Of a stretch of 64,000 nt of DNA, positions 1,303 through 60,336 are shown in pieces. Below the pieces are notes generated by a model. That model did not search any database. It saw only the letters and a program-made list of their open reading frames with translations, and had not been told where the DNA came from. The position numbers and the translations under genes are program-made. Source of the stretch: Zygnema circumcarinatum SAG 698-1b (taxonomy: Eukaryota; Plantae; Zygnematophyceae); assembly GCA_037447605.1 (NCBI GenBank), contig CM074812.1, positions 1 through 64,000 on the forward strand, written 5' to 3'. Numbering within the stretch: the first letter of the stretch is position 1; every line of letters begins with the position of its first letter.

Positions 1303-4300
1303 TCATGAGTCGTCGGGGAGGGGCCTGGCAGCAGCACGGACGACATTGCAGTATTGAAACATCATGGCCTCCATCGTGGGCCGGTCGATGATGTCGGCTT
1401 GGTAGACCAGCCGCCCTCTCAGGCTCCCGTCCTGCTGCTCTCGCAGAATCAAACAGACGGGCGTCAGAGCCGCCTCGCCTTCCCGTGCCCACGATGCAGT
1501 CAGGTCGTATTCGGTGTGCGCCTCGCCCAGGTTGAAGCTATGTGGACTCGAATTTGTACCCGGCTGTAAAAAGTTGAAATAAGCTTGAATTAAATTAGAC
1601 TTGGCAAATTCTGGCCTCGTCAGAACCTCGCTCACAATGTGGCGGAGTGTGACAGATTGATTCTCCAGCGCTTCAAGCACCCTCTCTTTGACTTGATGGA
1701 GGACGTCCTTGAACGACAAACCCATTGCAGCATCTTTCGAGGGGTCAACGGCAGCTCGCAGAGTTGATGCAGTCTCCAACTGAGAATCGGACATAGGCTT
1801 GAAGTCAGCCACGATGGGCATGACGTCAGCCACATGCCCCAGCATCCCCTGATGCTCCCCCAGCGGCCTCCGTGCCATGAGTGTCCCCACAACAATGCGC
1901 CTCTGATTGCTCCAAATGTGAAGCAACGAATGGAAGGCAGCGAGCGCAGCCATGTTCAGGGTGGCCCCCACGCCGTGCGCCACTGCCTCGAGGGCGGACC
2001 TCACGTCCGAGTCGAGTGAGAAATCCAACCAGGCCCCTCTGCTGGGGATGGCCCCGCCGGTCTTGGGAGGGTGGGTGGCCTGTAGGCGCAGAGGCTCAGG
2101 GTTCCTTCCGATGGTTTTCACCCAATAGGCGAGCTCCGCCTTCTCTGCCCCACCGGCCAGCCACTCCTTCTCCCACGCCACATAGTCCGCATAGGTGGCA
2201 GCCGCTGGAAGGTTGTCGGTGGTCCCTGTACGATACACATGCTCCAGTTCTCTATAGAAAACTGCAGCTGAGATGCCGTCAAATATCAAATGGTTGAACA
2301 CGCACACAAGAAACACCTCGCCCTGGCACCCTCTAATCAGAGTCACTCTGAAAAGGAGCCCTTGTGCCGCCTTCATGTCGAACGGCCTCCTGGCAAAGTC
2401 TAGAGCTCGTCTCAGTTCCCATTTCTGCTCGTAGGGCGTTTTAGCGTGTGTGACATCCGCAGAGGCCAAGGTGAATGGAACAATTGTGTAGTCTTGGTCG
2501 ATCTGATCCACACATTTCGGCACAATCTTATGCATGTTGCGCAGGAAGACAGGCCCAAGAAATCCGGCTGCCATGGAGGCCACCCGCGCCCCCCCCGCGC
2601 TGCCCCCTCCTGGCGGCGGCCTTGCGGCCCACCGGTTGAGCACCGCCGCCATGACGGTGGACCCCACCCCGCCGTGCTCCGCCGAGAACCGCATTCTCAG
2701 GGCCTGGTGGCGCCGCTGCAGCTGCTGGACGGCGTCCTCCAGCCTGCGGGGGTCGATTGTGCCCTGCAATACGCTCGGCGGATACTTTACATCATCGCAC
2801 TGCTGCAAACCTTCGTGTGTTCGAAATTCTACTGACAGAGTTTGCGCAGGACAAAACCGCGAGATGATGGAGAATGAAGTCGGAAAAAAAATCATGGGAA
2901 GTCTCTCTAGCTGTAAAAAGCTGCGACTTTATGTTGCATGCTGAGCAATCCCTAGCCAACTTCAACACTCACGCAACTCACCCAGCCATCCACGTTACGT
3001 GCTTCACAAATGACAAGGTTTGAATGAGCACGCCCGTTTTTGTTGGCTCTGAAACTCTCCCACCACTCAGCTTTTTACGGTCTATATTCCCTTGTAAGAG
3101 GCAGAGAAACATACCTGCACTTTCCATACGTCGGAAATGTCCACCACCTCTGGATTGGGCAGAGTATGGGTCACCACCCACATGACTTCCTGCGCATGGG
3201 AGAGAGGGACATGCATGGCGACATGGTGGTGCGCTGTCACAGGCTCCTTCTCTTCCTCCTCCTCCCCGCCCAGATAGAGCTGCAGACCGACGCTGCCGCG
3301 CAGCGTGGCCCCTTCGCCGGCGTGCACGTGGAGGCCGTTGGAGACCTGCGCCTCCGCCGGACTGCTCTCCTTGAGCATCGCGCTGAGGCTGTACACGCGC
3401 TGCTGCCGCCTCTGCAGGTGCGCCTGCACGAGCTTCTGCTGTTGCCCGTCGCGGGTCAAGAAGGTTTCCTTCTGTTTCTGCTTCAGGATCTCTGCAACGG
3501 CTTCCGCGGTCGGCCTCTCAAAGAACTGCCGAATGGTGATGGAGGAGGGGGGCAGCGCGAATGCTTGGTGCAGATGCGCCACCGCTTGCGACGACAAAAA
3601 CGAATTGCCCCCAAGAGCAAAGAAATTGGAGTTTCGGAACACCTCTGAACCGTCCTTCAGCCCTAGCACGGTCGAGAAAACATGAGCCACCATGCGTTCC
3701 TCCTCGTTGATGCACTGCGCACCCTCCTCGGATGACCCAAAGCCTGACTGAAAGTTCTCCAGCGAGGGTTGGGGGAGCCGCTGCCTGTCCACCTTTCCCG
3801 AGCTGCGAATGGGCGAAAACATCAACATTGTCTCAGTTGTTTGTGAATCCCGCTATCCCTGTAGAGTGAGACATCTTCGTTTGGCCATCATGCGATGCGT
3901 CACATAGGCCGCACAGTCCGTTACCGGGCAGCTCGGCTCCAAAATAAGGGCCTCGACCAACAGTTGCGTCATTCGTGCAGTCTTAGATGGCATTGCTCAT
4001 CCACATCCCAAAGCTTGAAAAGGAGGCAGTTTTGTCAAGCCTCTGTGACAGGAATATGGTTGAACTGTGCCCTTTTTGACAGAGACCAAACAAGAAGGAC
4101 TCATTCAATCTGGACACGACAGGCTTGCTTTCGTACGACCTAACGTAAGGCAATGCACTCCTCTAACAGGCCCTGCACTCACACGGTGAGGGGCAGCTGG
4201 TCCATGAGCACATAGGCGGCGGGCATCATGTAGCTCGGTAGCTGTGCAGCTGCCACGGCCTGCACCTTTTGCAGAAGGCCTTCCCTGCTGAAGGAGCTGT

Positions 4301-7300
4301 GGGACATCATATAGGCTGCGAGGTAGGGCCGGCCAGGCTCATCCTCGCGCAAGATGACAACACATCGCGCCACGCCATCCACGCTGCTGATGTGCTTTTC
4401 AATCTCACCAGGCTCGACGCGATTGCCTCTAATTTTGATCTGCAGCAAAGACAAATGCGCATTTCTGACACATAATGAGCTTCCCTCCAGCAAGCACAGC
4501 CCAAAAGACAAACAGACTTCAGACAAAAGGATTAGCACCAAACCCGCACCAGAAATAGTCCAAAATTGCCTTGATGCACGTTCGTTTCTTCATTCAGGAA
4601 TACACTCTCGAACAAGTGTTCTACCAGTACATTATTGCGCACCTAAAGATAGGTACAAAAACAAGAATACGCAACCTTCATATTATTGACAACGAGTCTG
4701 GAGATCCGACTGGCTACTGCCAGTGTCTTGAGGCACGGGCAGGTGCACCTGAAAATCCACTCTTCCCAAGAATTGGACATTCCCGTCCTGCAGCCATCTG
4801 CCTCTGTCTCCTGTTTTGTAGACCACTCGGTCATGCCGACCAGTGCTGTACGGATTGGGCCTAAACGACCGAGAAGTCAAATCTGGTCGTTTCAGGTATC
4901 CCCGAGCCACGTGAATTCCAGAGATGCAAATCTCACCGGGAACTCCAATGGGCAGCAACTCCAAGTTGGGTCCTAAAACGTAAACCTGTGACCAAGAAAA
5001 GGAGCAAGCACCAATTTTGGCGGTTCGGTTTGGATGGAAGCAAGTTGAACTCCAAACGCTTTCGAGACTTTCAAAAGCGAACAGGCAAAGCGATGTGATG
5101 GTCCCCAGCAGAAGCAATCCCTAGAAAAACGAAATGAATCAGGGTAGACTTTCATCTTCAAGTCTCAAGAGTCACTAGCAGGGAGCGAACAACTCCAGGG
5201 CTGATGGTAGGCAGGCATGATTTTACAAAGAGTATGATTCGATATCCGCTTACAGGGAAGCAGAGTAGTGGTTACAATATGCTGTGGGTTTCGTAAAGTC
5301 TGGGTGTTAAATGAAGCTTATGGGAGCGAGTAACGCGAGGTGCTACAGTATGTAGTCCCTTACATGAGCGCCATCCAGCGGCCGTCCGATATGGTCGGCC
5401 ACGTCATCGGCCGGCCGCCACAGCTGGCAGGTCACTGCAATGGCGCACTCGGTCGGGCCGTAATGCTCGATGACAGTGCGGCCTGCGCAGGGAAGAGCCC
5501 TCTGCTGCTGTCTGTCAGCCGCTCTTCAGAAGGGCCACTGGACTACACATCACGCATCCTTTCATTCGGCGTGTAATCATAAAAAACATTGTTGCGCATT
5601 AGATGAAGACCCGCAATGAACAGAAACCGACTTCACTGCAGTTGAGCAAACATGTTGGACATTACCTGCATTTATCCATTTCTTCAAAAGAACTCGCGGA
5701 ACCGTCTCGCCAGCAAGTGCCAGCCATCTCAGCGAAGGCACATCGTCGGGGTTCAGCAGCGAAGCAACTGTTGGAGTCAGGACCACTCCAGTCACTTGAT
5801 GATGTCGAATAAATCCTTGCAAATCTGTTAACAACTCATCCTTGCTGCAGATTACCAATGTCCCTCCGGCGTCGAAAGTGCAATAGACATCCATAGCATG
5901 CAAATCAAAGGTCATTGCAGAGAGCTGTCCGCGAATGTCAGGGGTTTCGCGTGGAAATACATCGCGAAAAGCATTAACCAAGTTCCGCACTCCTTGATGC
6001 TCCGCAACCACTCCCCTGCCAGAGGAAAGGAAGATCCAGATGCGGCCCGATTGATGAGTGGATGGATGCCCTTTCTCAAAGAAAGAGATCGAACTAAAGA
6101 AAATGAACGACCACAAAGTGACAAGGCCAGAAATATCCGTTGAACTGTGCAAAGCGCACTATACAGACGTAGAGCAAACGTGTTCCATATCTTTCTCTCA
6201 CATACATTAGTCAAAAGGACTGGCACTCCCACTGCCACAATGAGTTTCCTCAGAGCAGCACAGTGCCAGGATGATGAAGGAAAAACAGTGACTGAAGCAG
6301 CTCAACGGCACACCCGCCTGCTGCCAAAGTAGTGACTGAGTCCTTACTTTGGTTCCCCGGTTGAGCCACTAGTAAATAGGACATAACAAACGTCAGAGCC
6401 GGACGGTCTCCTTTCCTCAAGTATCTTCATATCCACACTGTTGCCCTTCTGATCCTCCACGAGCAACACTCGAGCTTTGCCTTCACTTTCCAGCCAGCTG
6501 AACTGATGGATGCTATCGACCGTAGAAAAGATAACCTTCAGCCCTGCCTGGTCCACCAGTTTTTCAATACGAGCCCTGGGGAATGCTGGATCCAGTGGGC
6601 AGTAGCCCATGCCAGCCATAAGCACCCCTGCCATAGCTACGACCCATTCGTGGCCTCTTTCTAATCCTAACCCTATCAGCTCCGGCTGGTCAGTTGGCAA
6701 ACTCTGATTTTTCGCACCACATGTTGTGAAGAGTGCAGAAGCAACCTCTCGTGCTCGGTTATACAGCTCCAAGTATGTCAATGAGCGCCTGCTATCGATC
6801 ACAGCAACAGCATCCGGGTTCCTTCGCGCTTGTCGTTCCAAAATGTCAACCAAGGTATCACCGTGCGCTTGCCTGTCAGAAGCTGTCGGCACAGCGCGCT
6901 TGCTGAACCGGTCTAGCACTGCTAGCTTCTCTTGTTCGGTCAGCAACGGCAGCAGGTAAATGGGCATCTCTGCAGCTCCTGACACTTTCAGAGATTCCAA
7001 CATATGAACATAGTTATGTGCGAGGCGAGTCATGGATTCTTCGTCGTACAACTCTGATTTATACTCAAATTGAGTGCTAATAGAGCCATCTCTGCCAGGG
7101 GAAAGGCGTAAAAATATTTCGAACCGTTGTCTGTCTGTCTCTCGTCGTGACGCACTCGCTGGAGAACCGCAAAATTCAAAACCAGCACTGCAGGAGTTTT
7201 CTGCAGGATCAACAGCTCCAGGAAATGCAGCTTCTACACGAGCCAGAACTTGTGAGAAAGTGACGCTCTTTTCTGACTTCACGTCATCGTGCTGGACGCT

Positions 7301-7684
7301 TCCATTGACAGGGTTCCCATTACTTTCACGGGCGGCGGAGTCGCAATGAAAGCTCACAGTGATGCTTGCTATGGTATTCTCCGCTTCCGCAGAAGGAGCG
7401 CTTCGCCCGTCACCCTGTGCGTGGATCACACCGTTCTGATCCGCTCTTCGCGGCTTCCCACTCGGTAGCCCTACTTTGACGGAACCAGTAGTAGGGTTGT
7501 ACCGATACAGCAAACAGTGATAGGCTGCTAAAAAAACAGATACCAACTTAGCATCTGCAAATTGTGGTCCAGTACTTATCGCAGTAACCGTTGCCTCCTT
7601 CAGCTTGCAGGATACCAAGCCTGGCGCCCTCTCTTGCTCTGAGTCAGAGACGCAAGTAGGCGGCGGAAGCTCCAGGATCCCCAT
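1303..7684 (-). CDS. Non-ribosomal peptide synthetase, single module: truncated C (C-lobe only) - A - T(PCP) - terminal C; 7 coding exons, 1482 aa
   Basis: Exons 7684-6348, 6015-5666, 5482-5364, 4985-4749, 4439-4183, 3802-3115 and 2763-1303 all have GT-AG boundaries and sum to 4449 nt in frame. A-domain cores: LTYLEL, YVLFTSGSTGEPKG, TFD, HYGPTE, GEICISG...ARGY, YKTGDRGRW, GRVDFQIKIRGNRVEPGEIE, LPSYMMP, LPLTVSGKVDR. T domain: FFALGGNS (Ser at 3603-3601). C domain: LSHAQ..W, RHQALRMRF, RPFD, NHLIFDG (2295-2275), LAYW, FHSLL..W...IVVG. An in-frame TAA lies just upstream of the ATG at 7684. Confidence 0.95.
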
Positions 7685-7699
7685 CCCCTGCTCACAGCT

Positions 7700-8358
7700 C
7701 AAACCTTACCCTTCCCGCGACACCTGCACTCGTTTCCCAAAGGGAATATTCAGGTGCACGAGCTAAGAAAGACAGGTTTCACCAAGAGAGGAACAAAGAG
7801 ATGCGAGAGCGCGCGCACTAATCCGCACAGCAGACGCTCCGCCGGTCTTGAAACGGAGACGGAGGAGCAACGCAGGGCAGGCTGGCGCGCGCGCGGTTCC
7901 AAGCTTGCGAGAGGAAGGGAGAGGATCAGGCCCTGGCCCCGGCCCCGGCCCCGGCCTGCGGCGCGAGAGGAGGGCGAGGGCGCGCGTCCATGGCCGTCGG
8001 TCTCCTCCTCACTGTGCGTGCGTGCCTGCGTGCGAGCGTACCCGGCGCGGTCCTTCCGCGCGCCTTCCGCCGCCCGGCCTGCTCGTTCCTTCCTTCCAGG
8101 CCTGCCCGCTCGCCGGGGCAGCGCCGAAAGGGTTGCCGCAGGCCCGCGACGGCGGCCGGGCAGGGCTCCCGAAACCTTTTCGTCTACCCGCGCTTCGCCA
8201 AACAGTCCCTCGGGGCGCCACGCGGACGCTACGTGGCGGCCGGGCCGACGCGGAGGCCGCACCGTACCGTACGTCGGCCCTCTCTCCCTCGACCCGTCCG
8301 AGCGGGGACAGAGAGAGGGAGCGGGAGCGGGAGCGGGAGCGGGAGCGTGTAGAGAGCC
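7700..8358. promoter_or_regulatory. GC/CpG-rich bidirectional promoter and 5'UTR region shared by NRPS (-) and CPQ (+)
   Basis: GC-rich island between divergent genes, with tandem CCGTAC at 8262-8272 and (GGGAGC)n at 8317-8346. Every other gene start in the window also lies in or beside a similar island. Confidence 0.6.
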
Positions 8359-8703
8359 ATGGCGCCGCAGCTGGCGCTGCTCCTGTCAGAGGGCGGCGCG
8401 CCGCTCTATGCGGGTGCGCCGATCCTGCCGGGCCGCTTTCCTTCCGACGCCGAGGGCCTCGTACGCCACATCACGGTGCGCACGGCAGATATTTCAGTAA
8501 ACCATAAGCATTACGCCCCTCAATCAAACATATAATCCTTAAGTCCCAAAATATATCAATTATTATATTCTGTAAGAGGCCAAAGGGACGGAGCAAAAAC
8601 CTAAAGATCCGTCACATTTTCACAAAGAGTGAAAGCGGCCGAGGTGTGTGCTGTGAATTTCCGAACCGAGGAACCTCTCTTACTCCAGACTGTTGCTATA
8701 TAA
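8359..8703 (+). other. Candidate spliced uORF (43 codons) in the CPQ 5' leader
   Basis: ATG at 8359 (gccATGG) encodes MAPQLALLLSEGGAPLYAGAPILPGRFPSDAEGLVRHIT. A gtgcgc donor at 8476 joined to the cag acceptor at 8688 adds TVAI and TAA (8701-8703), 8 nt before the CPQ ATG at 8712. Confidence 0.4.
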
Positions 8704-8711
8704 AATTTGGC

Positions 8712-15403
<6,692 letters not shown>

Positions 15404-15930: not shown

Positions 15931-16953
15931 TCAGGAGTAGCCGCGGGAAGCAGAGTCCGAGGAGGGCTGCGTCTCCTTCCCCTCCTTGCGCGCCCGCCCC
16001 TCGCCCTCCTCCTCCTGCCAGTAGCCGGGCGGACTGTCGGACTCGTCCGCGACCTTGCCGTTGGCGGCCATGCGGAGCTGCTGGCGGAGGATGAGCTGCC
16101 GCGTGTCCACCTCCCGCGCGAGGCTGCGCGCCTCCACGCGCGCCGCAGCCGTGCTCCGCGCGCCCCTCCCGCTTCCGCCCGCGGCCCCGCCCCCCCCGCC
16201 CCCGCCCCCGCCCTCGCCCTCGGCCTCGCCCTCGCCCTGCGGCCCCCTCACGCTGCTGCTCGCGGAGGCCGCCCACCGCCGGGCTGCCCCACAAACCTGC
16301 ACCTGCCGGCCCCTCCTCGCCTGTCATGTCATGCCGGACATGGAACCTAGAAAAGAGCATGACAAGAAAAATTGTGACCAAGATAAATTACGTGTGTGGC
16401 GCATTCGACACTCTGCAGGCTGCCCAGCCATCGCTTTTTCTACGGAGCAGCGCAGTGAACATCCATTGCGGCCGACTAAGGAAAGGAAAGCGAAAATTTT
16501 CAAAGAAATCAGAGAAAGACATTTGTTTCATTGCGCTCTAGGAATAAAGAATCCCTGTAATTCTCCACGAGTTGAATAGCAGCAAACGAACAACAGCATG
16601 ATTCGCCCAAAAAGGAGGCGGTTACTCACGGAAAGAGCAAACACCGAACCATCTGTTTTTCTCTGCCAACTGCGCTACAGTCGAACAGAACACAGTTTTA
16701 CATTTCGAAAGAAGAGAATGAACAGAGTGCAGCGTCCCCGCCAGAGCCTACTCCGCGTGCAGAGCGGCGCCTGTAAAGCAGTGCTCACCACTGTCAGTCG
16801 CAGCCCACTCGACGGGGGGACGCCAAGTCCTCCAAGCGCCTCTCGCAGGCGCCATAGCCGGCCTCCCCGCACCGCCGCCCGCCCCTCTGCCGCGCCGCCG
16901 CCCTCAGGCCGCGCCCGCCCCCCCGCGAAGCACCGCGCGGCCGCCCTCCGCAT
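15931..16953 (-). CDS. Orphan protein of ~190 aa, Gly/Ala/Arg-rich, possibly mitochondrion-targeted; 3 exons
   Basis: ATG at 16953 (gccATG) begins MRRAAARCFAGG.... Exons 16953-16789, 16662-16630 (33 nt) and 16302 (or 16296)-15931 join in phase 0 with gtgagc/gtgagt donors. No recognisable domain; the 3' end is uncertain. Confidence 0.45.
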
Positions 16954-18126
16954 GGCGCTTCCCTCCCTCCCCCTCTTCCTCTCCCTCTCTCCCTCTCCCC
17001 CTCTCCCCCTCTCCCCCTCTCCCCCTCTCCCTCTCCCCCTCTCTTCTCCTCTCCCTCTCTCCCTCTCCCCTCCGCTGCGGTGAGACGCGACTCGCGAGCG
17101 CACATGCATGGCCTGCCACGTGGCGCGCTCACATTGCCCGCCACGTGGCGCGCTCTAACCTCGCCACGAGGCGCGCCGCGCGCGTGCGTGCCGTACGGCA
17201 CCGCCCGTGTCGGGCCGGGCGCGCACGGGCCCGCCATTACGTGCCGTACTGCGCGCGGGGTTCCGCACGTGCCCGCCCGCGAGGGGGCCGCCCACGTGCG
17301 CCATCCGCCGTGGCAGGCCCCGATTGCGCGAGCGGATCCGGGGCGGCGAGTCGCGGCGCGCGAGGCGATTCGCGCAATCACTCCCGCGCGCGCCATTGGC
17401 CCGCGGCCCGCGCGTCGCGACAGACCGACAGCCAGACCGGGCCGACAGACCGTCCGCTGGCGGGCCGCGCGCGATCGACGGCCGCCGTCACGTGGGCGGG
17501 CGCACCGCAACCGAAACCGCAACCGCAACCGCAACCGCAACCGCCCGCCCGCCGCGGAAAGCGCCCCGGGCACGCACCCGGATCGCTCGCCGCCACCGCC
17601 AAAAAGGACGTGCGCGCTTGCGCCAAGCGGGCGGGCGGGCGGGCAGCGCGCGGCCAATCGCCGGGATGCCGTACGAGCGCAGTGCGGCACGTGCGCGCGT
17701 ACGGCCGCGCTGCCCGCCCGCCCGCCGGGCGCCGGGCAGCCGTGGAACATGTTTTTTGGCTGCCCAAATCCTGCCCCTCGCCAAACCCGAGGGCGGAAGA
17801 ATCTCCGAGCCTGGCCCGGGCCTGTTTTTCGCTTCTGCCGGACTTCTGGAGGGCCGAAGTCGAATCTGATACGGTAGCAAGGCAAAAAATGGTCGGAGCC
17901 TGTCCCGAACCGCCCGTAGGCCCGGTGCGGTACCGAGCCTGCAGGCCCGGCGCGGCGGTCCTGACTCCTGAGGGGGCTGCGCAGATACATACGGCAGCGC
18001 GATATAGCCCATGGATGAATCTGTGAATCTATCTATCTCCCACGCAGCGGGGGAGGGAGAGCGGGGGGGAGAGGCCGCGAGGATATCTGGCGTTCTTGCG
18101 CCCTCATTGAGCTGCCGGGAGCTGTC
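16954..18126. promoter_or_regulatory. Very GC-rich divergent promoter with G-boxes, CCGTAC motifs, an (AACCGC)n microsatellite and a ~100-bp hairpin
   Basis: GCCACGTGGCGCGCTC twice at ~17115-17156; further CACGTG at ~17267, 17294, 17489 and 17688; CCGTAC at 17191, 17244 and 17669; (aaccgc)n at ~17508-17544; inverted repeat at ~17627-17725. Confidence 0.6.
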
Positions 18127-29400: not shown

Positions 29401-32400
29401 TGTGGGCACTTTTGGCGTTCATCTCATCCGGTTTGAGTGTAGGAACTTTTTTGTGGTGGCAGATTGCTTGCTTTTCAGGAACTCGCAGCCATACGGCACA
29501 AGCAATGGTGGAAGGTGCTTGGATCATTGTGGCTTTTAACGTATGAAGGAGAGTTCCACATGCTATTATTGCTCAGGAGGTGGTGTGATATGGATGATGA
29601 CAAAACTTGTTATGCTTTTATTCAGGCAGGGTACCTTCAGCTCATGAACTCCTCTCTTCCGCTGTACTATGCCCTTCTGTTGGGTTGCAGCTATCAAAAC
29701 CCGCACGAGGCACAACTGCTATTTGGACGAGGCTTTCGAGCAGGAGTTGATCGGAGGGAGCAAAAGAAGGTAACGCTCTGCAGCAGTACTTCTTCTTGCA
29801 TAGCATCATGAACTAAATATCAGTACTTTTTAATTTTGGTTGTCGACTTCTGGATATAGTGTTACGTTACATGTATGTCTTTTCATATGCAATAGAAAAC
29901 GTACTTTAGCACTGTCCTTTGAAGGGTACGGAAAGAATCCGGGGGAAATCATTTTTTATCAGCTTGAAACGAACAATAACAGTTTTTTGTTTGCTTGTAC
30001 CATGGCTGGTCAATGTGTGCAGCTGGCAGTTAAAAATGAATCGGATCTGCGAGCTCAAATTCGGGTAATGCCCGACTTGCTCGATTCACCTTTCGTAACT
30101 GCTGCTGCTGCTGCGAGTTGATGCTCGTCAGGAAAACCTTTCCTTAATCTGAACATTCTTCCTTCGCCCCATTCGTGCATGCTTTGCGGGCGGTGTTCTT
30201 GTTTCAGGCAAAGGACGGGATTGAGGAAAGCCGCGAGGAGGCGGTGGCGCAACGGGAGAAGGAGGCAGCTGCTAACGTTTATGACACATTTGACATGAGG
30301 GTGGACCGCCATTGGTCTGAGAAGAAGGTGGGACTCTCCAAAGGCACTTTTTGCAGGGGCAGTTCGTCGGGATTTGACGTGTGCTTGTGTCCGAGAGACC
30401 GAGCGTCTAGGACTCTTTCATTGCACTCCCAATTTGCATATCTGCCGGAACTTGAACATTGGCTTGTGCGGATTGTGCAGCTGGAGGAGATGACAGAACG
30501 CGACTGGCGTATTTTCAGGGAAGATTTCAACATTTCATACAAGGTTTGCATTCTCAACTCAATTTGATGGAAAGTAAGGTCAGACGTCGAGGGAGGAAAG
30601 CAAAGGCAAGGAAGGAATGTGGAGGAAAGGAACAGATGCAATGATGGAGGCGGGACAAGAAGGATGGATGTCGGAAGCAGGGAGGGAGGAACACATTGCA
30701 GGAAGGGAAGTTGGAGGAGCGGTTGCTAAACCTTCGGGCAAGATGTTGCTCGTGCTGTGGGGGTTCAGGGCGCACGCATTCCGCGGCCCTTCCGGAACTG
30801 GGAAGAGTCGGGCCTCTCGCAGGAGCTGCGAAAGGCGGTGGAGAAGGTCGGCTACTTGAAGCCGTCTCCAATCCAGATGGCGGCGATTCCCCTCGGGCTG
30901 CAGCAGCGAGATGTCATCGGCATCGCAGAGACAGGTAATTTAACGTCTCTTTGGGTTTTCACCGTCTTTATCCGAGAATTAAGGTAAGACCGCGTTCTTC
31001 TTATTCATTCGCTATTATTCTGGCGGGTTCTGAATTTCTTGTCGAATGAAAATTTGGGTGACTGACCGTAGAGGAGACGCAATACAGCCCTCGCCATTTC
31101 CTTCCATCCCCACCATTGGCTCTATGTTCTTTTGGACTCTCGTGCTGGACCAAACCAGCACTTTCCTGGGTCATGCTTGTGAAACGATACGAACTTTTGA
31201 CTGTAAGCTGAAGGTGGTTTGAATGTGCACTCGTTGAATCTTGTTGTCATTGTGGGTTGAATATTTATAGTGACAGGGTTCGTGTCCTCTAATGTAAATG
31301 TGACAGGTTCTGGAAAAACCTGTGCTTTCGTTCTTCCTATGCTCACCTACATCTCTAGATTGGCGCCGATGACAGAGGAGAATGAAGCTGAAGGCATGTT
31401 CCAAAGACCTTCTTCCTTATTTCATTGCCCTGCTGCCGTTTCTTTGCACTTATTGTAAGCCTGTGTAAGCCTGAGGAAATCACCCGCCCGTGGCACCATC
31501 ACTATGATACGATGTGCACCCAATGTGTTGCGAAGGTCCGCGTTGTCGTGACTGCTAGCAAGGGCATTGTGGTTGGCTTCTGGGGTCTCGCCAACAGTTT
31601 TGGGGGATTTGGAAGGATGCACAGTGAATAGTTTTTAATCTCGAGACACTACTCTTTTTACTTTTTATCTGCAGAATTGATCAGGAATGTTCCACTACTT
31701 ATTTCTGGCCTTAGTTGGCATGCCACGAAGCTACTTGTGTCAGATGTCGAAGTAGAGTTGACTAATTTGGAGAAGGGAACTGAGGGCATTCATGCAGGCC
31801 CATATGCGGTGGTAATGGCTCCAACTCGTGAACTCGCCCAACAGATCGAGGAAGAAACTGTCAAGTTTGCTCATTTTCTGGTCAGTTTGCCGACCCTTTG
31901 TGAAGTAGATGATGCAGTGGTCCCGTGCTCTTTTAGGGGCGAGGGTTTACGCCAAACTGTCGCCACAGTCGGCGATGGATGGTCGGAGCTTTGAGTTTCA
32001 TCGTCCCGGTAACTGTTCATTGCGATTCCAGATTTTCATATGGCGGTGGATGTAGCCAGCACAGAACGAGGAGGGTAAACAATCAGAACTGCAACCTCTG
32101 CCCTCGCTCAGACTCAGGTGACCTCCTTTGGATGGCCACTGCCGGCTCGCTTCGCCCCAGTGAACCACTGTCTTTCACAGCGAATCGACGTTCAGAGATT
32201 TAGCTAAGGACAGTTGCCGTCTTACCGTGGGGATTCTTTCTCAGAATATAGATTTATAGACTGGGTCAGGCCGATTCAGCACAAAATCTCAACGGGCCTG
32301 AAGGGCTTCTTTTTCCATGTTATCCCTCCAGCTCAACAATGTCATTGAAACCTTTGGGTTAGAGCCCAAACATGGATCTGCGAGGTTTGTCACGGTTTTC

Positions 32401-40194: not shown

Positions 40195-40597
40195 GGGAGC
40201 GAGGTGGCGAAGGGAGGCGGGCGCAAGCGGTGCAATGCGCAGGCGGCAGGGGCCGAGGCGCTAGCGGCGGCAGCAGCAGCGGCAGGCTCCGGGCGGGGGT
40301 CGAGGGGCCATAGCCATCAACACAGCCACAGCCATAGCCATAGCGCGACTGCACCTGCACCTGCACCTGCACCTGCACCTGCACCTGCACGTCCGCCATA
40401 TGGCGTATCGTATTGTATGTATCGTATCTCATATATCGTATCGTATCGTGCTGAGGGCCGCGAGTACATTAGCTCTCGTGGGTGAGGTCAGAAAGTTTGT
40501 GGTGACGTCAGCAGGTTGCCAACCCAACCCGCTGACGAGTCTGCCTGCCTGCCTGTCTGCCTGCCTGCGGGGCGGGGCAGGGCGGGGCAGGGCAGCC

Positions 40598-43500
40598 ATG
40601 GAGGCGGGGGGGGGGGCGAGGCAGCGGCTGGCGCAGCTCCTGGAGCCGGCCTCGGTGGCCCTCGTGGCCACGGCCGTGCTGGTGGTGCTGGCCTCCGCCT
40701 TCCGCGCGCTCAACCAGCAGAGAGAGGCCGAGCGCAACCGCGAATTCTCCGAGGCCTCCATTACGCTGGACGGCTCGCAGGCCCTCTTCATCCCGGTCGC
40801 GAGCTCCTGCAGCCTCCTGCTCATGTTCTACCTCTTCTCCACCATCTCGCAGCTGCTCACTATCTTCGTCTCTGTCGCTTCCGCTTCATCTATCGCTTTC
40901 TGCCTCTCTCCTTACTCCACTTTTCTCGCTACGAAGCTTGTCGGCCATGGCGGCTCCTCTTCTCGCTTCTGTTGTTGTAGCAGCAGTACGAGCTCAAGAA
41001 TGCAGGCCCTCCTTTTCTTGCTCAGCGCAACTATTGTTGCAGCATGGCTAGTTTCAGGGCACTGGGTGCTGAACAACATTCTTGGAATATCTATCTGTAT
41101 CGCCTTCGTCAGCCATGTCCGCCTTCCAAATATTCGAATATGCACTATTTTGCTCGGGTGCCTTTTCTTGTACGATGTTTTCTGGGTCTTCTTTTCAGAA
41201 CGCTTCTTTGGAGCCAATGTTATGGTGACAGTCGCCACGCAGCAGGCGAAGAATCCAATGCACACTGTTGCGCAACATTTGCAATTGCCAGTATCGCAGA
41301 CTATTACTAAAAAATTGGACCTTCCGGTGAAGCTGCTCTTTCCAAGGAACCTCCTTCTGAGTCGCGAGGCTTCGAATAGAGACGACGCGGCGGATTTTAT
41401 GATGCTGGGATTGGGTGATATGGTGAGTAAGGCTTGAAATTGTGCCTTTTGTGACTTTTTTTCTGTTTTGGATGCAGGCTTAGGTGGAGGTTACACTTAC
41501 TCTCACTGGTGGATAAGGAAACGTGTTTGGTTCTTGGACTGGTTTGAATAGTTGTGAATTTACTACCATTTCAGCGCTGTAGGAATATTGAGGAATATTT
41601 TTATTCCAGCAGCGGATTGAAACAACTTACATTGGACATCCTTGTGAACGTTTATCACGTCATTTTGCAAGGCTTTCGCTAGTGCAAACTTGTATATATA
41701 CAGTTGCATACTGTATATTCCAAAAAGTACCCGTTACATTATGATAACGTACTGGAAATCTTGGGTTATTGCACAAAGAGGAGGCTTATTTTGGAGAATG
41801 CGGAGTGTCTTCCTTTGCTAGTAGTCCCTTTTCCCGTCAATATGTACATGATTGTAAAGTTAATGAATGACAAGCATGTATGTTGTTGATTCAAAATAAT
41901 CGTTAAGCAGTAGGGTTGCCATTCAGGACGTGGACCAGGGGTTGGACATTCTTCACAAGCAAAAAAAATGTAGGCCAGTTTCGTTTTGTTGCTTGGTTAG
42001 TCAAGTCGGTTTGGGTGCAGTTTGGTTAGATAAGTTTCATTGGGTATTCATTGGGCTTCAGTATTTGAGTCACGCTCCCTATCTGAAAACTTGGAGGCCT
42101 TATGCCTGCACCATCACTTAGCGTTGAGTGAACCTGTCCACTATGCTCTTCCTTGTTGAAAACCTCGGGTTTGTGCAGCAAACTTTGACAGCAAAGATGA
42201 AGCTAGTGAATCTTGTTCGAATGTTGGTCTTGTATGGCAGAAAAATTTCGGTTGTATCGAGTGAGTGGTATCGAGCTTCATGGGAAAACTCTCAGCCATG
42301 TTTCGCTTGTCTATTAAACATGTGCTCCATGGCAAGTGCTTCCTTGAAAGGTCAGTTGGCCAAGTATGCAAATAACATAACATCAAAAGTAATGTCTGAT
42401 ACTTTAGATTCACGTTGTAACTCGTTAGCTTTTTCTTCACATACGCCCGGGGGTCACATTTCTGGTATTGCGTAATGTGGGTTGATTGGCAATGCATACA
42501 GTGAGATGGGGAACCTTTCAGGGTGTGCGAAAGTCACGTGAATGAATTTTTATGTGAGGCTGAGGACTAGCAATGGAGGAGTTTGTATATCAATCTGCTG
42601 TGAGTCGCTGAGGCGACATACGAGATTTGGCCCTTTGTTTGTGTCATTGCGTTTCTTTGACCAACAAACTGCAGGATGACAATTTGTCCTTACTCCTTCC
42701 AGATGAGCTCGCTAATGGGGAACGAATTCCCCCTAGTTGTTGATTGGATGTTTTTGTTTACTGTTTCCCACACGGAGAGAATCCGCAGCTGCATGTTTCA
42801 TGCTGAGTTGGCGATTCTTGCTTCCGGAGTCTGTCCCACATCGTCGCCCGGAAGATGTCATCTTCTCCTGGCCCTTTCATGAGCAGTTTCTGTTGCAAAG
42901 AACAAATGAAGTATAGATAATCTTCCTGCCTTTGGCCATTTTTAAGATAATTTATTTTCCCTTAATTTTTACAGTGAATTTCCCTCTGTGTTCTTCCTCC
43001 TCAAGGCATCCCTTCTAAATTTGTCTCTCCAACTGAATTGGAACTGCAGGCGATTCCAGGGATGCTGCTTGCATTAGTCCTATGCTTTGACCATCGCAAG
43101 GTGCGAGACTACAATGATATGGACCCAATGTCAGTAGGGCGGAAGGCTCCCGCCAGCAAAAACTACATATGGCATGCTGCTGCTGGCTACATGGTTGGCT
43201 TAATTCTAGCACTGGCGGTGGGTGTACTGACAAGGGCGCCTCAGCCAGCTCTGCTCTACCTGGTGAGGACACCTAACGTCTTGAAAAAGGACATTCTCGG
43301 GCTCATCCTTCTTTCTCTCGTTCTTTCCTCCAGTAGTCCCCCCTACCCCATCCCGTCCCTTCTGTTCCTGACCTTGGCAAATCCTCGTCTTCCCCTCCTC
43401 CATCTCTGTTTTCCTTCTCCCGGTTCCCTCCTTCCATCCCCCAAGTCTCTTCCCTTCCTCCCTCCCGATTTTCAATCTTTCTGCTCTCTCACTTCCTCCC

Positions 43501-48411: not shown

Positions 48412-51400
48412 CTAGAGGAAGCGTTGGCCGTGCGCATCTCGCTCTACAGCACCCCTTCTCACAACCATCCCCTGAAATCGTTTCTTTGGCTCCGAATCAT
48501 CCTCATATGCACGCAATACGAGGTTCACCAGCTTCCCACTTTCAAACTCTACGAAGGCACTACAACCCTTAAGCTGCTTCACTCTGCTGACGAAGCTTGC
48601 ATTCGGCTTTCCCAGCTCTTCACGCAGCACCTTATCAAACACAGTCCGGACCTGGACTTCATCCAGAGGCTGCGGAATATTTGCGGCATAAACGCACCTC
48701 TCTCTGTCTAATCTCACGAAACCGTCTTTCGATCCCTCCCCTTCAATTTCAACACGCGGTCGACTCCACAATGATTCCCTGCCCGAGGCCCTGCGAGGAG
48801 CCTCCTCCGCATATTGGCCATTGAATTCACGCTCGTCCTCGAGCTTCCTCTTGTCGGATGGGTGCGAACTACCATGGAGCGGGTAGTCCCCTTCATCACT
48901 ATTTGCCATACCTCTGTCCCCGTCCTTATGGTAGCGGTCACTAGAATAAGCTCGTTGCTCCCGGGAATCACGCCAAGAGCGGCCTTCGGGCCGTCGCTGC
49001 CGAGGTTCTTTGTGTGCTGTGTACTCAGCAACATCAAACTTGGAGCCTTTATGAGGCTTGACCTCCATGCCCTTAAATGCTGCCGGATTCTTCTTGTACA
49101 ACTCCAAAACCCTCATTGTCAATCGTTGCGATGGAAGAGCAATGAAAGCACAGTATGGCCGAACTCGCCGGACCTCACCCACGACATCACCTCCAACAGC
49201 TGTATCAAGATCTGCTGGGCTCACATTATCCAACAGAACTCTTTTGACGATAAACCCTATGGCAGAATCCGTCATATCCTCTTGCAGCCTTTGTACATAC
49301 ACAGTCCTGTTGGGTTCCAGTCTCGCTTTATAATGAAACGGCTTTTCAACCCGGGGTTCTTCCTTCCAGCTTGTTGGCCCTTCATGTCTGCTTCCAGAAG
49401 TTCCTTTCCTGAGAGACTTGGATCTCCCACCAGTGTCTAACAACCATCCATTGCTTGCTTCAATACCTGCAGCTTTTTTTTCCAGCTTGGGCAACATGCC
49501 ACTAAACACCTGAGGGTCACGTTCATAAATGGCCAGAGCTCGATCCGCAAGTTCTGGGGTGGGCAGATACACCCACGCTGTTTCTGCTAATTTCTCGTAC
49601 CTCACTGTGGAAATCAACTTCCCCATCGTTAGCTTCCTTGCACGCGATTTCTCCACACTTGTTGCGTGAATTTGAAGGGCTTCATGAAATATGTTGTAAA
49701 TTTTATCGACCGTGACAGTTTCTGGAAGCTCGCTAACGGCCAAAACAGTCACTCCCACGTCTGTTGGAAGAATGTCTCCTCCAGGCCCAAGCTGTACTGA
49801 CAATCCCTGGAAGACATCCGGCTCCATGGCCAGGAGCTCGACACAGGCCCCTGCCAGCTGCTCATGTGCAAGCTCCACCACGCAGAGAAAGCGATCAAGC
49901 TGCGTCACGCTTAACACCATATTTTCACTCTCCAACAACCCTTTTGGGACCTCAAGACGTTCCGTGAGTACCGAGTCAAAAAGAGACTTCACCAGCTCTT
50001 CAGATAGATTGGTTTCATCTACCTCCCCGCATGTCACGTGCAATATGCGAGTTGTCGGAATGTCTGAAATGGGTGCTTCTACAATATCTGCAGCTTCTTG
50101 TGTGACCTCCGGTGCTTTTGTAGCTATGGAAGATGGCTCTGCAAAAGCTGCCTGCGGTTTCTCTTGTGTTGGCGGACTTCTCGAGCGGCGCATCCTCTTT
50201 GCAGGATGTCGCTCTGGAGAGCCACCAGCCTTTGGTTCTGAGTGGGGTGAAGACGCCCTTTTCTGTGGAGCAAGTGGTTTACTATCTATGGGCAAAGCTA
50301 CCTTCTGATCGCCCAAATGGGCGGGCAACTCTGCCCCTTTCGTGAAGTAGTCTGCCGTATCATCCAGCAGTTGCTTCACTAGCCTCTCAGCTGCAAACAG
50401 AGATGCCAAATTTATGGCCCGCAACCTCACGACAATGCGCACAATGCTACCGGAACTGAAGTTCCTGTCCTCGGTAATGCTTCCTTTCCGCTTTTCCTCC
50501 TCTGATGGACCGCTTTTAGCTTGAGCCAATTTGAGCATAACTCCCGTCTCTTCCTCGATCTTCTCAAAATTGATGCGGTCCTCACCAGCCACCTTCCTCG
50601 CCACCTCTTTCACTGACGGTCCACTTTCGGCCGGATGGCGACTAAGTGGTCCTTCATAAGCAAGCCGTCTACTACACAAGCCTCGCGTCGCAATGGAGCG
50701 CAAGAAATCGGCAGCTACGTTCACAAACCACTTGGTCTCGAAAGCTTTCCAGCCTTCTTCTATCCGCTTCGAAAGGATGGCATGCACCGCATCTGAGCCC
50801 TCACATGCAGTCAAATGTAGGCAGAGTGAACTCATATGTCTACAGTAGACCTGCAGATGAATAACATGACTTGGAAAATTTGCAAACTTGGCCGGTCGTA
50901 GTGGTCAAATCAATATGAAAATCCGTCACCATAGCATATATGCATTACAAGTTCGATAAGGAAAAGACAAGCCCAATTGGCGTAAATTTGAAGTACAGTT
51001 GGATTGACATCTCCCTCACAGCCCGTTGTGCATACTCTCATGTCACTACTAAGTCGAACCCAGCCTCTTTTCATCATAATCTCCCGTCTTCAGAATATTG
51101 TAAGCGCATCATCAGCAGCATAACGCCTCAGCCAAATTATATAAAATCCTCAGTAAGGAGCGTGAGGGTGTGAAACACATGCACAGCCTGCAAACAACCT
51201 TTATCTGAGTGCTGAGGTACAAAATGACTGCAAAAAATGAACAACCAAGGCTCTGGAGCTCTCACCTTGGCCACCTCCTTCCTTGGCTGCCACCTCCTTA
51301 CAGACAATGGAGACACCTGTCATATCCCAACCCATGATGCGCCACTCACACTAAGAGAAAGGCAGTAAAATGTCTTCACGTGCCACATTTATCACTCTGA

Positions 51401-58600: not shown

Positions 58601-59316
58601 TAATGCTCCAATAAAAAAACGAAGTTGAATTGGTCGTGACTTTTAAGGCTTTAACTAGTTTCAAGAAGTGGAAATGACAGTAGAGAGAAGGGAAGAGGAA
58701 AGCTTTCTAAAATTGCAAAAAAATCTTTAAGGTCTCGTCCGACAGGCGTCTTCTCCAGGCCTTGGACGTCCCGTGTGCCAACTTTCTCCATTTCCCTCTC
58801 GTGTTCCAATTCTTATCTCCTTTCCCCTCCAGCCCCTCTCGCTTCCCTGCTCCTCTCTCCTCTCGCACTTTTAAACTGAAAGCTACGTACCACTCGTTCG
58901 TCTGCGCCCGGGACGCCCTCCACGATCTTGATTCTCGACCGCGTCTCTTCACACATCTTCTTCACGAACTCGCCCCTCCTCCCAATTATGCTTCCCACCT
59001 TGTGCATTGGCACTATGAGCCGGAACACGCTCTCCCCGGGCCATCCCGGCCACTTCCGCGCGCCAGAGCCCGGACTGGAGTCGCTGTCCTCCAGCGGCCG
59101 CTTCTGCCCGCCGCCTCCTTCCGGCGGCTCAGTCGACAGCCCCGGCACGGGCGTCGTGTTCCCTGAGCCTGACAGCTGTCCTGCGCCAACTTCCGAGTTG
59201 GGGCCATCTATGGCATCCTCCTCAAAGCTCTCCATGAGAGGAACCTCTGCGGGGGGAGGGATGGAGAGAGGCATGGGGAGAGGCATGGCGAGGCCCTCGT
59301 CGCCCTCGGCCGCCAT
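55674..59316 (-). CDS. FLK: FLK/PEPPER-family triple-KH RNA-binding protein; 6 exons
   Basis: [42 protein letters not shown] (KH1); [33 protein letters not shown] (KH2); [12 protein letters not shown]; [28 protein letters not shown] (KH3); ends ...YPNTYGY*. FLK versus PEP orthology is not resolved. Confidence 0.93.
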
Positions 59317-60336
59317 GGCTGCGAGCGGGCGAGCGGGCGGGCGGGCGAGAGATGCCTTGCGCGGGCGAGCGCGGGAGGGAGAGGGAGCGCGGAGCGCGGA
59401 GCGCGGCGAGAGGCCGTCGGATGCGGCATCGGACGGCTTGGCGCTGCAGCAGCAGGGGTTGTATCGACTACGGTATCGATAAAAATATCGTATCGGATGG
59501 CGAGTCGGACCACCACTTTTTGGGGCAACGGGGCTGGAGACTTTCAAAAAAACGAAACGAAAAAAAAAGGAGACACGAGCAAAGTGCACGCAATAATGCC
59601 ATCCAACTCCGATGCTTTGCAAAACGCAAAAATTAAGGGGCCCATCATACAGGCCCAAGATCTCTAGATCCATTTCTGGCTCTGCCGCTGCCATGGGGTA
59701 CCCCCTGCAACACATCGGCACCACCCTCCCTCTTGCCCGCCGGAGGGACCCCCAAGCACGCCATGGCCGCAAGCATCTCGCACAGCCCCTACTCGCACAG
59801 CGCATTATCTCATTCATCTCACGGCCGCTACTGGGTTTCCAATGCGGACGCGGAGGTAGAGCCTGAGGGGGGCGCAGAGGTGGCCTCAACATTCCTCCTT
59901 AGGCCGCCTGTAGGGCTGCCCGCCATGTCGTCTGCATCCTTGCAATTCAACAACTTGGCCACCTTCTGCACGCCCCCTCCAGTACCACCCTACGGATGGG
60001 CGCATGCAAACGTGGTGTCTGCACCCCGCTTGGCCTGGCTGCTGGCTACAGCCGCCCGGCCCCTCTACTAGCTTGACAACAACAACATGGAGGTACATGT
60101 GATCACTGCGACGAGATTGGCACAACAGTGAGGAAGGAAGGAAGGCCCTCCGCCGCATCGCCACAGATCATGTGCGAGCGCTTTCCAAGGGTTAGGGCCG
60201 TCCTTGCAGTTAGCTAAGAACGGCGTTGTCGCAGGAACAAATTCAGATACAAGGGCATAATTTTGAATTCAGAGAGGATAATACACTCGAGGGACCCTAT
60301 GGAAGGAGAGGTTTGAGGTCTTGCAGGAGCGTCCTA

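Follow-up and report, generated by a model that had tools for sequence, protein, structure and literature searches.

A spliced and expressed non-ribosomal peptide synthetase gene, probably of old bacterial-type origin, in the green alga Zygnema circumcarinatum

Non-ribosomal peptide synthetases (NRPSs) are generally seen as a speciality of bacteria and fungi. Here, we describe an NRPS encoded on the minus strand of a 64-kb stretch of Zygnema circumcarinatum DNA (hereafter the window, meaning the whole stretch analysed). The gene truly belongs to the nuclear genome of this zygnematophyte green alga. Its product is probably a single-module thiotemplate synthetase, in which a degenerate condensation (C) remnant precedes adenylation (A), thiolation (T) and terminal C domains, and which loads an amino acid, releases it through that terminal C domain and goes back to an old bacterial-type ancestor. 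The original prediction had called it a domesticated streptophyte NRPS, and its splicing, expression, host-like composition and zygnematophyte orthologues are in line with that description.

The gene was rebuilt from the sequence. Read from 7684 to 1303, seven exons and six GT..AG introns yield an open reading frame of 1482 amino acids, with a coding length of 4449 nucleotides and a single terminal stop, the same exon and residue counts as originally predicted. Its features, all on the minus strand, are:

7685..8012, minus: 5' UTR (transcript contigs ending at ~7919-8012)
1303..7684, minus: NRPS coding span, 7 exons, 1482 aa (reconstruction and spliced contigs)
6348..7684, minus: exon 1, aa 1-446, C-lobe remnant and A domain up to core A3 (FTSGSTGEPK)
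6016..6347, minus: intron 1, 332 nt, GT..AG (RNA contigs)
5666..6015, minus: exon 2, A4 region (Pfam, RNA contigs)
5483..5665, minus: intron 2, 183 nt, GT..AG (RNA contigs)
5364..5482, minus: exon 3, A5, HYGPTE (motif, RNA contigs)
4986..5363, minus: intron 3, 378 nt, GT..AG (RNA contigs)
4749..4985, minus: exon 4, A6, A7 and beginning of A8 (Pfam, motifs, RNA contigs)
4440..4748, minus: intron 4, 309 nt, GT..AG (RNA contigs)
4183..4439, minus: exon 5, A8 and A9, AMP-binding_C (Pfam, RNA contigs)
3803..4182, minus: intron 5, 380 nt, GT..AG (RNA contigs)
3115..3802, minus: exon 6, A10 (SGKVDR), T domain, long low-complexity T-C linker and C motif C1
2764..3114, minus: intron 6, 351 nt, GT..AG, within the C domain (RNA contigs)
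1303..2763, minus: exon 7 (RNA contigs)
1305-1303, minus: stop codon

Spliced contigs from four RNA runs in four studies (X20, X7, X10 and X14) match all six junctions exactly, their joints skipping the six intron intervals, which read CT..AC on the plus strand. The exon chain, for which RNA-seq had been the proposed check, is thus reproduced at every junction, and the six introns, whose splice signals had been likened to those of neighbouring housekeeping genes, are all removed in RNA. The same contigs place the last acceptor at 2763 and not at 2910, an in-frame alternative (204-nt intron, 1531 aa) that adds sequence foreign to a C domain and is found in no RNA contig. A minor 95-nt intron in the UTR, at ~7721-7815, is seen in one RNA run. 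The N-terminal C domain might have been completed by further exons upstream, a possibility that was rejected: an in-frame TAA at 7708-7706 lies ahead of the ATG at 7684 and contigs run unspliced to ~8012, so no upstream coding exon is missing. The point at which the N-terminus is truncated is identical in all orthologues.

Pfam searches of the exon translations returned AMP-binding, AMP-binding_C, PP-binding and Condensation. The resulting order is degenerate C-lobe remnant, A, T and terminal C, and a thioesterase (TE) is absent:

6899..7684, minus: degenerate condensation remnant, aa 1-262 (Pfam, blastp, alignment)
3778..6823, minus: adenylation domain, aa ~288-775, exons 1-6 (Pfam, motifs, pocket code)
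3484..3684, minus: thiolation (carrier) domain (Pfam PP-binding)
1306..3210, minus: terminal condensation domain, aa 965-1482, split by intron 6 (Pfam 79-434/456, PDB sequence match, AF2/Foldseek)
5906-5904 (D483) to 3795-3793 (K770), minus: pocket residues D483, L484, M487, V524, A545, A547, H569, I577, A578 and K770

The N-terminal remnant, a feature that the original prediction missed, matches positions 380-441 only of the Pfam Condensation profile, and aligns (blastp to a C domain of the giant Mesotaenium NRPS described below, and alignment) solely past about position 245 of a full C domain. HHxxxDG is absent and motifs C5-C7 are lost; the C-A linker is retained. By contrast with this degenerate lobe, the A domain has its cores and the T domain its phosphopantetheine serine, as had been read from the sequence. 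Cores A3-A10 are all found and conserved in orthologues (FTSGSTGEPKG, FDLH, HYGPTE, GEICISGIHVARGYL, YKTGD, GRVDFQIKIRGNRVEPGEIE, LPSYMMP and SGKVDR), and among the residues kept are the A10 Lys and the α-amino-group Asp. In the T domain, phosphopantetheine would be attached to Ser834 of LGGNS (codon 3603-3601), a serine conserved in five orthologues.

The terminal C domain had been described as full, and motifs C1 to C5 are indeed found in it and conserved in orthologues. Its active-site motif is N1153-H1154-LIF-D1158-G (His codon 2292-2290), i.e. NHxxxDG: HHxxxDG is retained except for its first His, which is Asn here and Ser in Spirogloea, so that the strict HHxxxD criterion of Shelest et al. 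(PMC4661987) is not matched to the letter. In an alignment of 67 sequences, H158 is nearly invariant and D162 invariant. An insertion of ~60 residues lies between C2 and C3 (about 2670-2395), and neither a TE nor an R domain follows downstream. Sequence matches in the PDB are Txo1/Txo2/TycC6. The AF2 model (pLDDT 86, pTM 0.87) was matched by Foldseek to many solved C domains with a probability of 1.00 and query-normalised TM scores of ~0.65-0.69, the best being the condensation domains of Txo1/Txo2, TomB, TycC and SrfA-C; as modelled, the domain is predicted to have the canonical condensation-domain fold of two CAT-like lobes. A look-up in the ESM Atlas gave generic NRPS clusters only.

The degenerate N-terminal C domain, the missing first His of the terminal motif and the low-complexity inserts might together point to an expressed protein that is decaying or has been re-purposed and makes no thiotemplate product. 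We consider this very improbable, given that proteins of only 40-63% overall identity have retained every A core, the carrier serine, the catalytic His and Asp of the terminal C motif and all ten pocket residues, the signature of selection on catalysis.

The ten pocket residues read DLMVA(A/G)H(I/V)AK, with the same pattern in five orthologues, and the equivalents of D235 and K517 are kept. The method of reading the code was checked on a Calothrix NRPS, for which it returned Gly-like and Dab-like codes. Compared with nameable codes, that of the Zygnema protein has no confident match; its lining (L, M, V, A, A/G, H, I/V, A) suggests, as far as sequence goes, a substrate whose side chain is of medium to large size and mostly non-polar.

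Full-length orthologues are found in Mesotaenium, Spirogloea and two more zygnematophyte transcriptomes, at 40-63% identity. The values are 62.5% for P0001 (full length), 57% for P0003, 50-60% for P0163 of Mesotaenium and 40% for P0045 of Spirogloea, and all four proteins have the remnant-A-T-C layout. In Spirogloea, the locus span given by the gene name exceeds the CDS length, indicating that introns are present there too. Searches of this genus returned only single-module proteins and stand-alone C proteins, the latter being paralogues; a word-index search with the C-domain exon as query gave a single Spirogloea protein and so no further taxon. Mesotaenium also has a predicted five-module NRPS of 6035 residues (ME000131S00500, P0002). 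As this giant likewise ends in a C domain, release by a C domain appears, from domain order, to be the rule of the zygnematophyte NRPS family. The family is already present, unnamed, in public gene catalogues, and full-text searches of the literature on NRPSs in algae and plants found no description of such enzymes in Zygnematophyceae. The view that this NRPS had yet to be characterised thus stands as far as the searched literature goes, but the gene is not unique.

We then considered whether the locus truly belongs to its host. The flank holds a large plant-type exon:

40400..41437, plus: signal peptide peptidase-like 1 (SPPL1), large exon (Pfam Peptidase_A22B)

SPPL1 lies 33 kb from the NRPS gene. 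Its best matches are land plants and Mesotaenium ME000153S01470, with identities of 69% to Marchantia and 66% to Mesotaenium, in keeping with the plant-type neighbours first described. The Mesotaenium scaffold ME000153S carries both the NRPS (ME000153S01465) and SPPL1 (ME000153S01470), their names five serials apart; the linkage is therefore conserved. A Pfam search for tailoring or partner genes among 20 more ORF fragments from 8.5 to 62 kb detected only SPPL1, a KH-domain exon and weak TPR matches, and hence no sign of a biosynthetic cluster. Rfam and tRNA scans of the 64-kb window found nothing.

Contamination, a chimeric assembly join or a very recent transfer confined to this strain would account for the nearest non-algal relatives being bacterial NRPSs. 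Such an origin is, in our judgement, close to inconceivable. Six spliceosomal introns are removed in RNA from four studies, the full 6.4 kb of the locus is supported at 1.00 in DNA runs from three studies, and composition resembles that of host genes (GC3 0.62 vs 0.66; intron GC 0.47). The plant-type SPPL1 flank and the linkage shared with Mesotaenium place the gene in a green host, no fewer than four further zygnematophytes have orthologues, whose gene tree resembles the species tree, and a recent transfer would also have to be squared with there being no close bacterial relative among 185,579 species genomes.

The history of the gene was addressed with separate A- and C-domain trees, as had been proposed, and in both the zygnematophyte NRPSs form one clade amid bacterial NRPSs. 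In the A-domain tree, the ten zygnematophyte domains group at 100/100 and the orthologues at 100/99; Spirogloea branches first, then Mesotaenium, then the remaining orthologues, in agreement with the species tree of Zygnematophyceae. In the C-domain tree, a clade supported at 100 unites the terminal with the stand-alone C domains, and it is joined to the C domains of the giant at 99. The zygnematophyte clade sits on a long stem of 0.94 changes per site, which obscures its bacterial donor. The nearest neighbour in the careful A tree is a thraustochytrid NRPS, with support of no more than 92/87. The nearest non-algal sequences are bacterial NRPSs, e.g. those of Tumebacillus, Calothrix, Longimicrobium and Myxococcus, and the closest relatives outside the algae reach ~30-38% identity. 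Among the 185,579 species genomes, no close bacterial or archaeal donor for the C domain was found, and the A domain of the Mesotaenium giant reached at most 40% identity to its best match.

Searches of 1.84 and 5.8 billion proteins returned no close land-plant, chlorophyte or fungal relative among their best hits, and in those lists no protein of other streptophyte classes or land plants ranked above bacterial NRPSs. The expected absence from land plants is thus upheld within these best-hit lists, and the orthologue search that had been suggested finds the gene in zygnematophytes with none close in land plants. We infer that the zygnematophyte ancestor already carried a multimodular NRPS of bacterial type, one elongation module of which gave rise to the family. 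Most parsimoniously, the gain from a bacterium occurred on the zygnematophyte stem, after the split from land plants. The original prediction had left the choice between an old horizontal gain and retention from an ancestor followed by loss in embryophytes; gain on the stem is the more parsimonious and is favoured, although the two are not separated by the data.

How might such an enzyme work? Ser834 of the T domain would first be phosphopantetheinylated. The A domain would then adenylate one α-amino acid, which would be loaded on the T domain as a thioester, and at the terminal C domain (His1154) the amine or hydroxyl of a second substrate would attack the aminoacyl group, releasing a putative aminoacyl amide or ester. 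Points against this explanation are the pocket code without a confident match, the Asn in place of the first His, the ~60-residue insertion in the C domain and the low-complexity T-C linker.

The terminal C domain may alternatively act on a carrier-bound acceptor of another protein. The assembly line would then be split, with the A-T-C protein as its first part and the C domain of this protein condensing the aminoacyl group onto one held by another protein's T domain, as exemplified in Pseudomonas by AmbB (A-T-C), which works with AmbE. LCL-type C domains normally take carrier-bound acceptors, elongation C domains provide the best sequence and fold matches, and Mesotaenium possesses a second, five-module NRPS. 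Nonetheless, tblastn finds no second carrier-protein gene within the 64-kb window, Spirogloea has orthologues yet yielded only single-module and stand-alone C proteins, and the stand-alone C paralogues of the same clade fit free or in-trans substrates. We therefore hold a split line to be unlikely. With one A-T pair, a C domain behind it and no TE, the protein could also be an iterative enzyme, possibly a dimer, that links two or more copies of its amino acid to form a dipeptide, diketopiperazine or homopolymer; ε-poly-lysine synthetase is an example of a single-module polymer synthetase that acts iteratively. This has no direct support. The pocket lacks an acidic residue that would pair with a cationic side chain and, by eye, the translation has no obvious membrane segments like those of polymer synthetases. 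We judge it less likely still, and retain release by the terminal C domain onto a second substrate as the preferred mechanism.

A broader proposal, about which we are divided and lean slightly towards doubt, is that the remnant-A-T-C synthetase, the stand-alone C proteins and the five-module megasynthetase, with their release by C domains, constitute a toolkit making novel peptide or aminoacyl-conjugate metabolites. It would be the first non-ribosomal peptide chemistry in Streptophyta, which embryophytes either lost or never received. Finding an expressed NRPS, its catalytic and pocket residues conserved, together with relatives that extend to a five-module enzyme in the class sister to land plants suggests that organisms used for reconstructing plant terrestrialisation hold metabolites of an unexplored class, and adds a clear, datable case to the bacterial gene families acquired near the origin of land plants. 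As a single module of 1482 residues with cDNA evidence, it is small enough for direct expression and assay.

In relation to known systems, 7 of the 32 algae surveyed by Shelest et al. (2015) had NRPSs, and Klebsormidium, the sole streptophyte among them, had none (PMC4661987). The NRPSs of that survey and that of Zygnema are alike in their rarity among algae and in having few C domains; no chlorophyte NRPS is among the close matches of the Zygnema protein. The A, T and C core motifs are shared with bacterial LCL elongation modules, i.e. those of teixobactin (Txo1/Txo2), tyrocidine (TycC) and surfactin (SrfA-C) synthetases, at an identity of only ~26-38%. The Zygnema NRPS differs from these in having just one module, no TE and an upstream C domain that is truncated and inactive, in its NHxxxDG motif and eukaryote-style low-complexity inserts, and in its six spliceosomal introns and nuclear locus. 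The closest paralogues of its A domain are those of ME000131S00500 (42-46%), sister to the single-module clade, and both proteins end in a C domain. The pocket codes of the giant differ (DVQVDGGVTK twice, DQHQEGSVTK twice and DLQQEGGVTK), and its C domains, at 26-29% identity to the Zygnema terminal C, are no closer than bacterial ones. Eukaryotic thiotemplate enzymes that lack a TE and release their product by a C-terminal transfer domain include fungal NRPSs with terminal CT domains, none of which is among the best sequence matches of the Zygnema NRPS, and insect Ebony, a single A-T module with an amine-selecting domain that yields an aminoacyl amine and whose last domain, unlike that of the Zygnema NRPS, is not a C domain. 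VibH, of vibriobactin synthesis, and SgcC5 are stand-alone or terminal condensation enzymes using a soluble nucleophile; the algal clade likewise contains stand-alone C paralogues. The logic of VibH and SgcC5 is that of the release proposed here, in which the C domain would hand a T-bound acyl group over to a free amine or hydroxyl, and SgcC5 is itself among the fold matches of the Zygnema terminal C domain.

Pfam searches of the translated minus-strand open segments of 7684-1303 identified AMP-binding, AMP-binding_C, PP-binding and Condensation domains. Joining at GT..AG borders gave a spliced NRPS model of 7 exons, 4449 nt and 1482 codons with one stop, which is terminal. For the last exon, two in-frame acceptors are possible, of which 2763 gives back the normal C1-C2 motif spacing. 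The rebuilt gene is identical to the 7-exon, 1482-aa model originally predicted.

Exons and terminal domain of the NRPS gene
7684-6348, minus strand, exon 1
6015-5666, minus strand, exon 2
5482-5364, minus strand, exon 3
4985-4749, minus strand, exon 4
4439-4183, minus strand, exon 5
3802-3115, minus strand, exon 6
2763-1303, minus strand, exon 7
aa 965-1482, minus strand, terminal C domain, interrupted by intron 6, motif N-H1154-LIF-D-G

Twenty runs under one organism label contain most or all of the 6.4-kb NRPS stretch; it is complete in 6 DNA runs from 3 studies, while the remaining runs cover 74-89% of it, near the exon fraction. Contigs of four runs (4 studies) were aligned to 2400-8390. 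In all four, contig joints omit 351, 380, 309, 378, 183 and 332 nt, exactly the predicted introns, with borders reading CT..AC on the plus strand and zero base differences. Thus, all six introns are confirmed and the gene is transcribed and spliced as modelled. The contigs extend unspliced upstream to about 7919-8012, and an in-frame TAA at 7708-7706 shortly precedes the ATG (7684), so that the protein starts at this codon. Within the 5’ UTR, a minor 95-nt GT..AG intron (7721-7815, minus strand) is seen in one of the four RNA runs (X14), the other three reading through.

The original observation was confirmed throughout: the A-domain cores, the intact LGGNS serine and the C domain which it described were all recovered by Pfam, motifs and a C-domain fold model. 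Cores A3 to A10 are all present in the A domain, and the T domain carries LGGNS, with Ser834 at 3603-3601 (minus strand), followed by a low-complexity linker of ~95 aa. The terminal C domain has a ~60-aa insertion between C2 and C3, as seen from the Txo1 alignment, and no thioesterase or reductase lies downstream of it. An AlphaFold2 model of its exon-7 part, computed from a 67-sequence alignment, has a mean pLDDT of 86 and a pTM of 0.87, and Foldseek gave probability 1.00 for its matches to solved condensation domains, led by Txo1/Txo2, TomB, TycC5-6, HtmB2-CT and SrfA-C. At the other end of the protein, residues 1-262 cover only positions 380-441, near the end of the 456-position Pfam Condensation profile. 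Against a complete C domain from the five-module Mesotaenium NRPS P0002 (“the giant”), whose HHxxxDG is at 161, they align only from about position 245. In a 17-sequence alignment this remnant keeps the first C-lobe helix, the last strands and the C-A linker, and has lost C5 to C7. Every NRPS orthologue carries this truncation, which implies descent from an elongation module in which the upstream C domain had shed its catalytic half prior to the divergence of these species.

Relatives were sought by scoring the C-domain exon with HMMER against 1.84 billion representatives, where five non-bacterial-looking proteins ranked above or among giant bacterial NRPSs. A word-index search with P0001 yielded the Mesotaenium orthologue P0163 and, as second match, the giant (ME000131S00500, 6035 aa).

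Relatives of the window NRPS
P0001, 1485 aa, transcript contig of SRR8128903
P0003, 1281 aa, EukProt Trinity assembly
P0045, 1672 aa, Spirogloea muscicola
P0005, 485 aa, Spirogloea, stand-alone C
P0065, 488 aa, genomic contig of SRR9302961, stand-alone C

All full-length relatives share the layout of the window NRPS. Identity to the spliced model is 62.5% over 1482 aa for P0001, 57% for P0003, 50-55% for P0163, 40-42% for the Spirogloea orthologue and 52% for the stand-alone Spirogloea C proteins. At 50-60% and 40% identity, respectively, the Mesotaenium and Spirogloea orthologues are too distant for the window to come from either alga. Locus spans in the names of the Spirogloea genes exceed the coding lengths, which implies that these have introns as well. 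The window A domain shares 42-46% identity with the giant’s five A domains and no more than 38% with those of bacteria; for the terminal C domain, the giant’s C domains and bacterial ones are equally far (26-29%). The giant is predicted to be (C)-A-T-C repeated five times, ending in C. Its modules form near-duplicate pairs with pocket codes DVQVDGGVTK (twice) and DQHQEGSVTK (twice), in a predicted and possibly fused gene model. Stand-alone C proteins of ~485 aa are encoded at 1491-2957 of L002, an SRR9302961 contig, and by Spirogloea P0005, P0151 and P0152; in L002, neither an A nor a T exon was detected upstream of the gene.

A signal peptide peptidase-like gene provides a host marker in the window:
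40400-41437, plus strand, SPPL1 exon of 345 codons, signal peptide peptidase by Pfam

Its top matches are land-plant SPPL1 (Marchantia paleacea, 69%) and Mesotaenium endlicherianum ME000153S01470 (66%). The Mesotaenium NRPS orthologue, ME000153S01465, lies on the same scaffold with a name five serial numbers apart, indicating that the linkage is older than the divergence of these algae. GC and GC3 are 0.563 and 0.622 in the NRPS exons (GC 0.474 in the NRPS introns), and 0.560 and 0.659 in the SPPL1 exon. A 359-codon exon at 58813-59892 (minus strand) encodes a KH_1 RNA-binding domain and thus marks a further host-type gene. The 807-codon ORF at 48412-50835 (minus strand) has no Pfam match, a GC3 of 0.50 against 0.62-0.66 for host exons, and only weak (0.76) KH/RRM-type neighbours in the ESM Atlas. 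Between the NRPS and the next genes lie a nearly pure (CT)n microsatellite of ~2 kb (10031-11982; 984 copies, 95% matches) and a second of 455 bp (12370-12824), which account for the bin’s extreme skew in GC and AT. In a GC-rich block (16000-18000; GC 0.69), both strands carry long, overlapping ORFs, and CT-rich tandem repeats occupy 16960-17073; a 398-aa ORF at 16794-17990 has no Pfam match. Four short exon-like segments of high GC3 (9446-9802, 14473-14829, and on the plus strand 15152-15400 and 30730-30984) resemble, by eye, M28-type peptidase and DEAD-box helicase Q-motif, with no Pfam match. tRNA and Rfam scans of the 64 kb gave no match.

Separate A- and C-domain phylogenies, one of the checks named with the original prediction, each unite the zygnematophyte domains. 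The ten zygnematophyte domains of an 86-row A-domain tree group together (SH-aLRT 100), with the single-module orthologues sister to the giant’s modules inside this clade; a careful 44-row tree supports the clade at 100/100, the orthologues at 100/99 and the giant’s modules at 100/97. The latter places Spirogloea first, then Mesotaenium, then P0003, then the window with P0001; the first position of Spirogloea agrees with the published phylogeny, in which it diverges earliest among zygnematophytes. The 74-row C-domain tree groups terminal with stand-alone C domains (100), and this group joins the giant’s C domains (99) against 60 bacterial domains. Among the best matches in the hit lists, none came from fungi, chlorophytes, land plants or other streptophytes. 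Searching 185,579 species genomes of bacteria and archaea gave neither a close relative for the window’s C domain nor anything above 40% identity to the giant’s A domain. Together, trees and searches make a single origin before the zygnematophyte radiation well supported, and point to a donor that is bacterial-like. The A clade sits on a long stem next to the NRPS of the thraustochytrid Mucochytrium quahogii (92/87), a lead that possibly reflects long-branch attraction. The interpretation as a streptophyte NRPS is upheld by splicing, SPPL1 linkage, orthologues and trees. Of the two histories offered for it, old transfer or loss in embryophytes, a gain on the zygnematophyte stem is more parsimonious: with no copy in the hit lists outside the class, it takes one event against two for an older gain followed by embryophyte loss.

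Ten A-domain pocket positions were then located from motif anchors:
D483, L484, M487, V524, A545, A547, H569, I577, A578, K770, minus strand, window pocket, DLMVAAHIAK

Four orthologues read DLMVAGH(V/I)AK. As a control, equivalent columns in a Calothrix NRPS gave DILQ-GMIWK and DIWEMTADDK, which we take to be glycine-like and diaminobutyrate-like, respectively. Because the Asp and Lys contacting the α-amino and carboxylate groups are conserved, an α-amino acid is the expected substrate. The pocket itself is lined mainly by small, non-polar residues plus a single His. The code is conserved although overall identity drops to 40%, and every catalytic motif is also kept, which argues that the enzyme works and uses one substrate throughout the class. 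One T domain, an intact terminal-C His, no TE, stand-alone C paralogues and a giant ending in C suggest that, most likely, the T-bound aminoacyl group would be passed on to a second substrate, at an amine or hydroxyl. In the main rival reading, the terminal C would condense it onto a carrier-bound acceptor on a partner protein, but no partner or tailoring gene was found in the 64-kb window (Pfam on ORF fragments, tblastn). Iterative self-condensation by the NRPS is a weaker rival to aminoacyl transfer.

In the full texts searched on NRPS in Zygnematophyceae, streptophytes, charophytes and Viridiplantae, no description of a zygnematophyte NRPS family was found; neither NRPS nor AMP-binding or condensation domains are mentioned in the Zygnema genome paper and its supplements. 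Public gene sets already list the Mesotaenium and Spirogloea proteins, under uninformative names. The degenerate N-terminal C-lobe, the conserved pocket code, the NRPS-SPPL1 linkage, the single origin and the family context of orthologues, stand-alone C proteins and a five-module relative are new beyond the original prediction. Of the 32 algal genomes surveyed by Shelest et al. 2015 (PMC4661987), 7 were reported to have NRPSs, Klebsormidium not being one of them. As an enzyme, the window NRPS is of a canonical type; it is its lineage that is unexpected.
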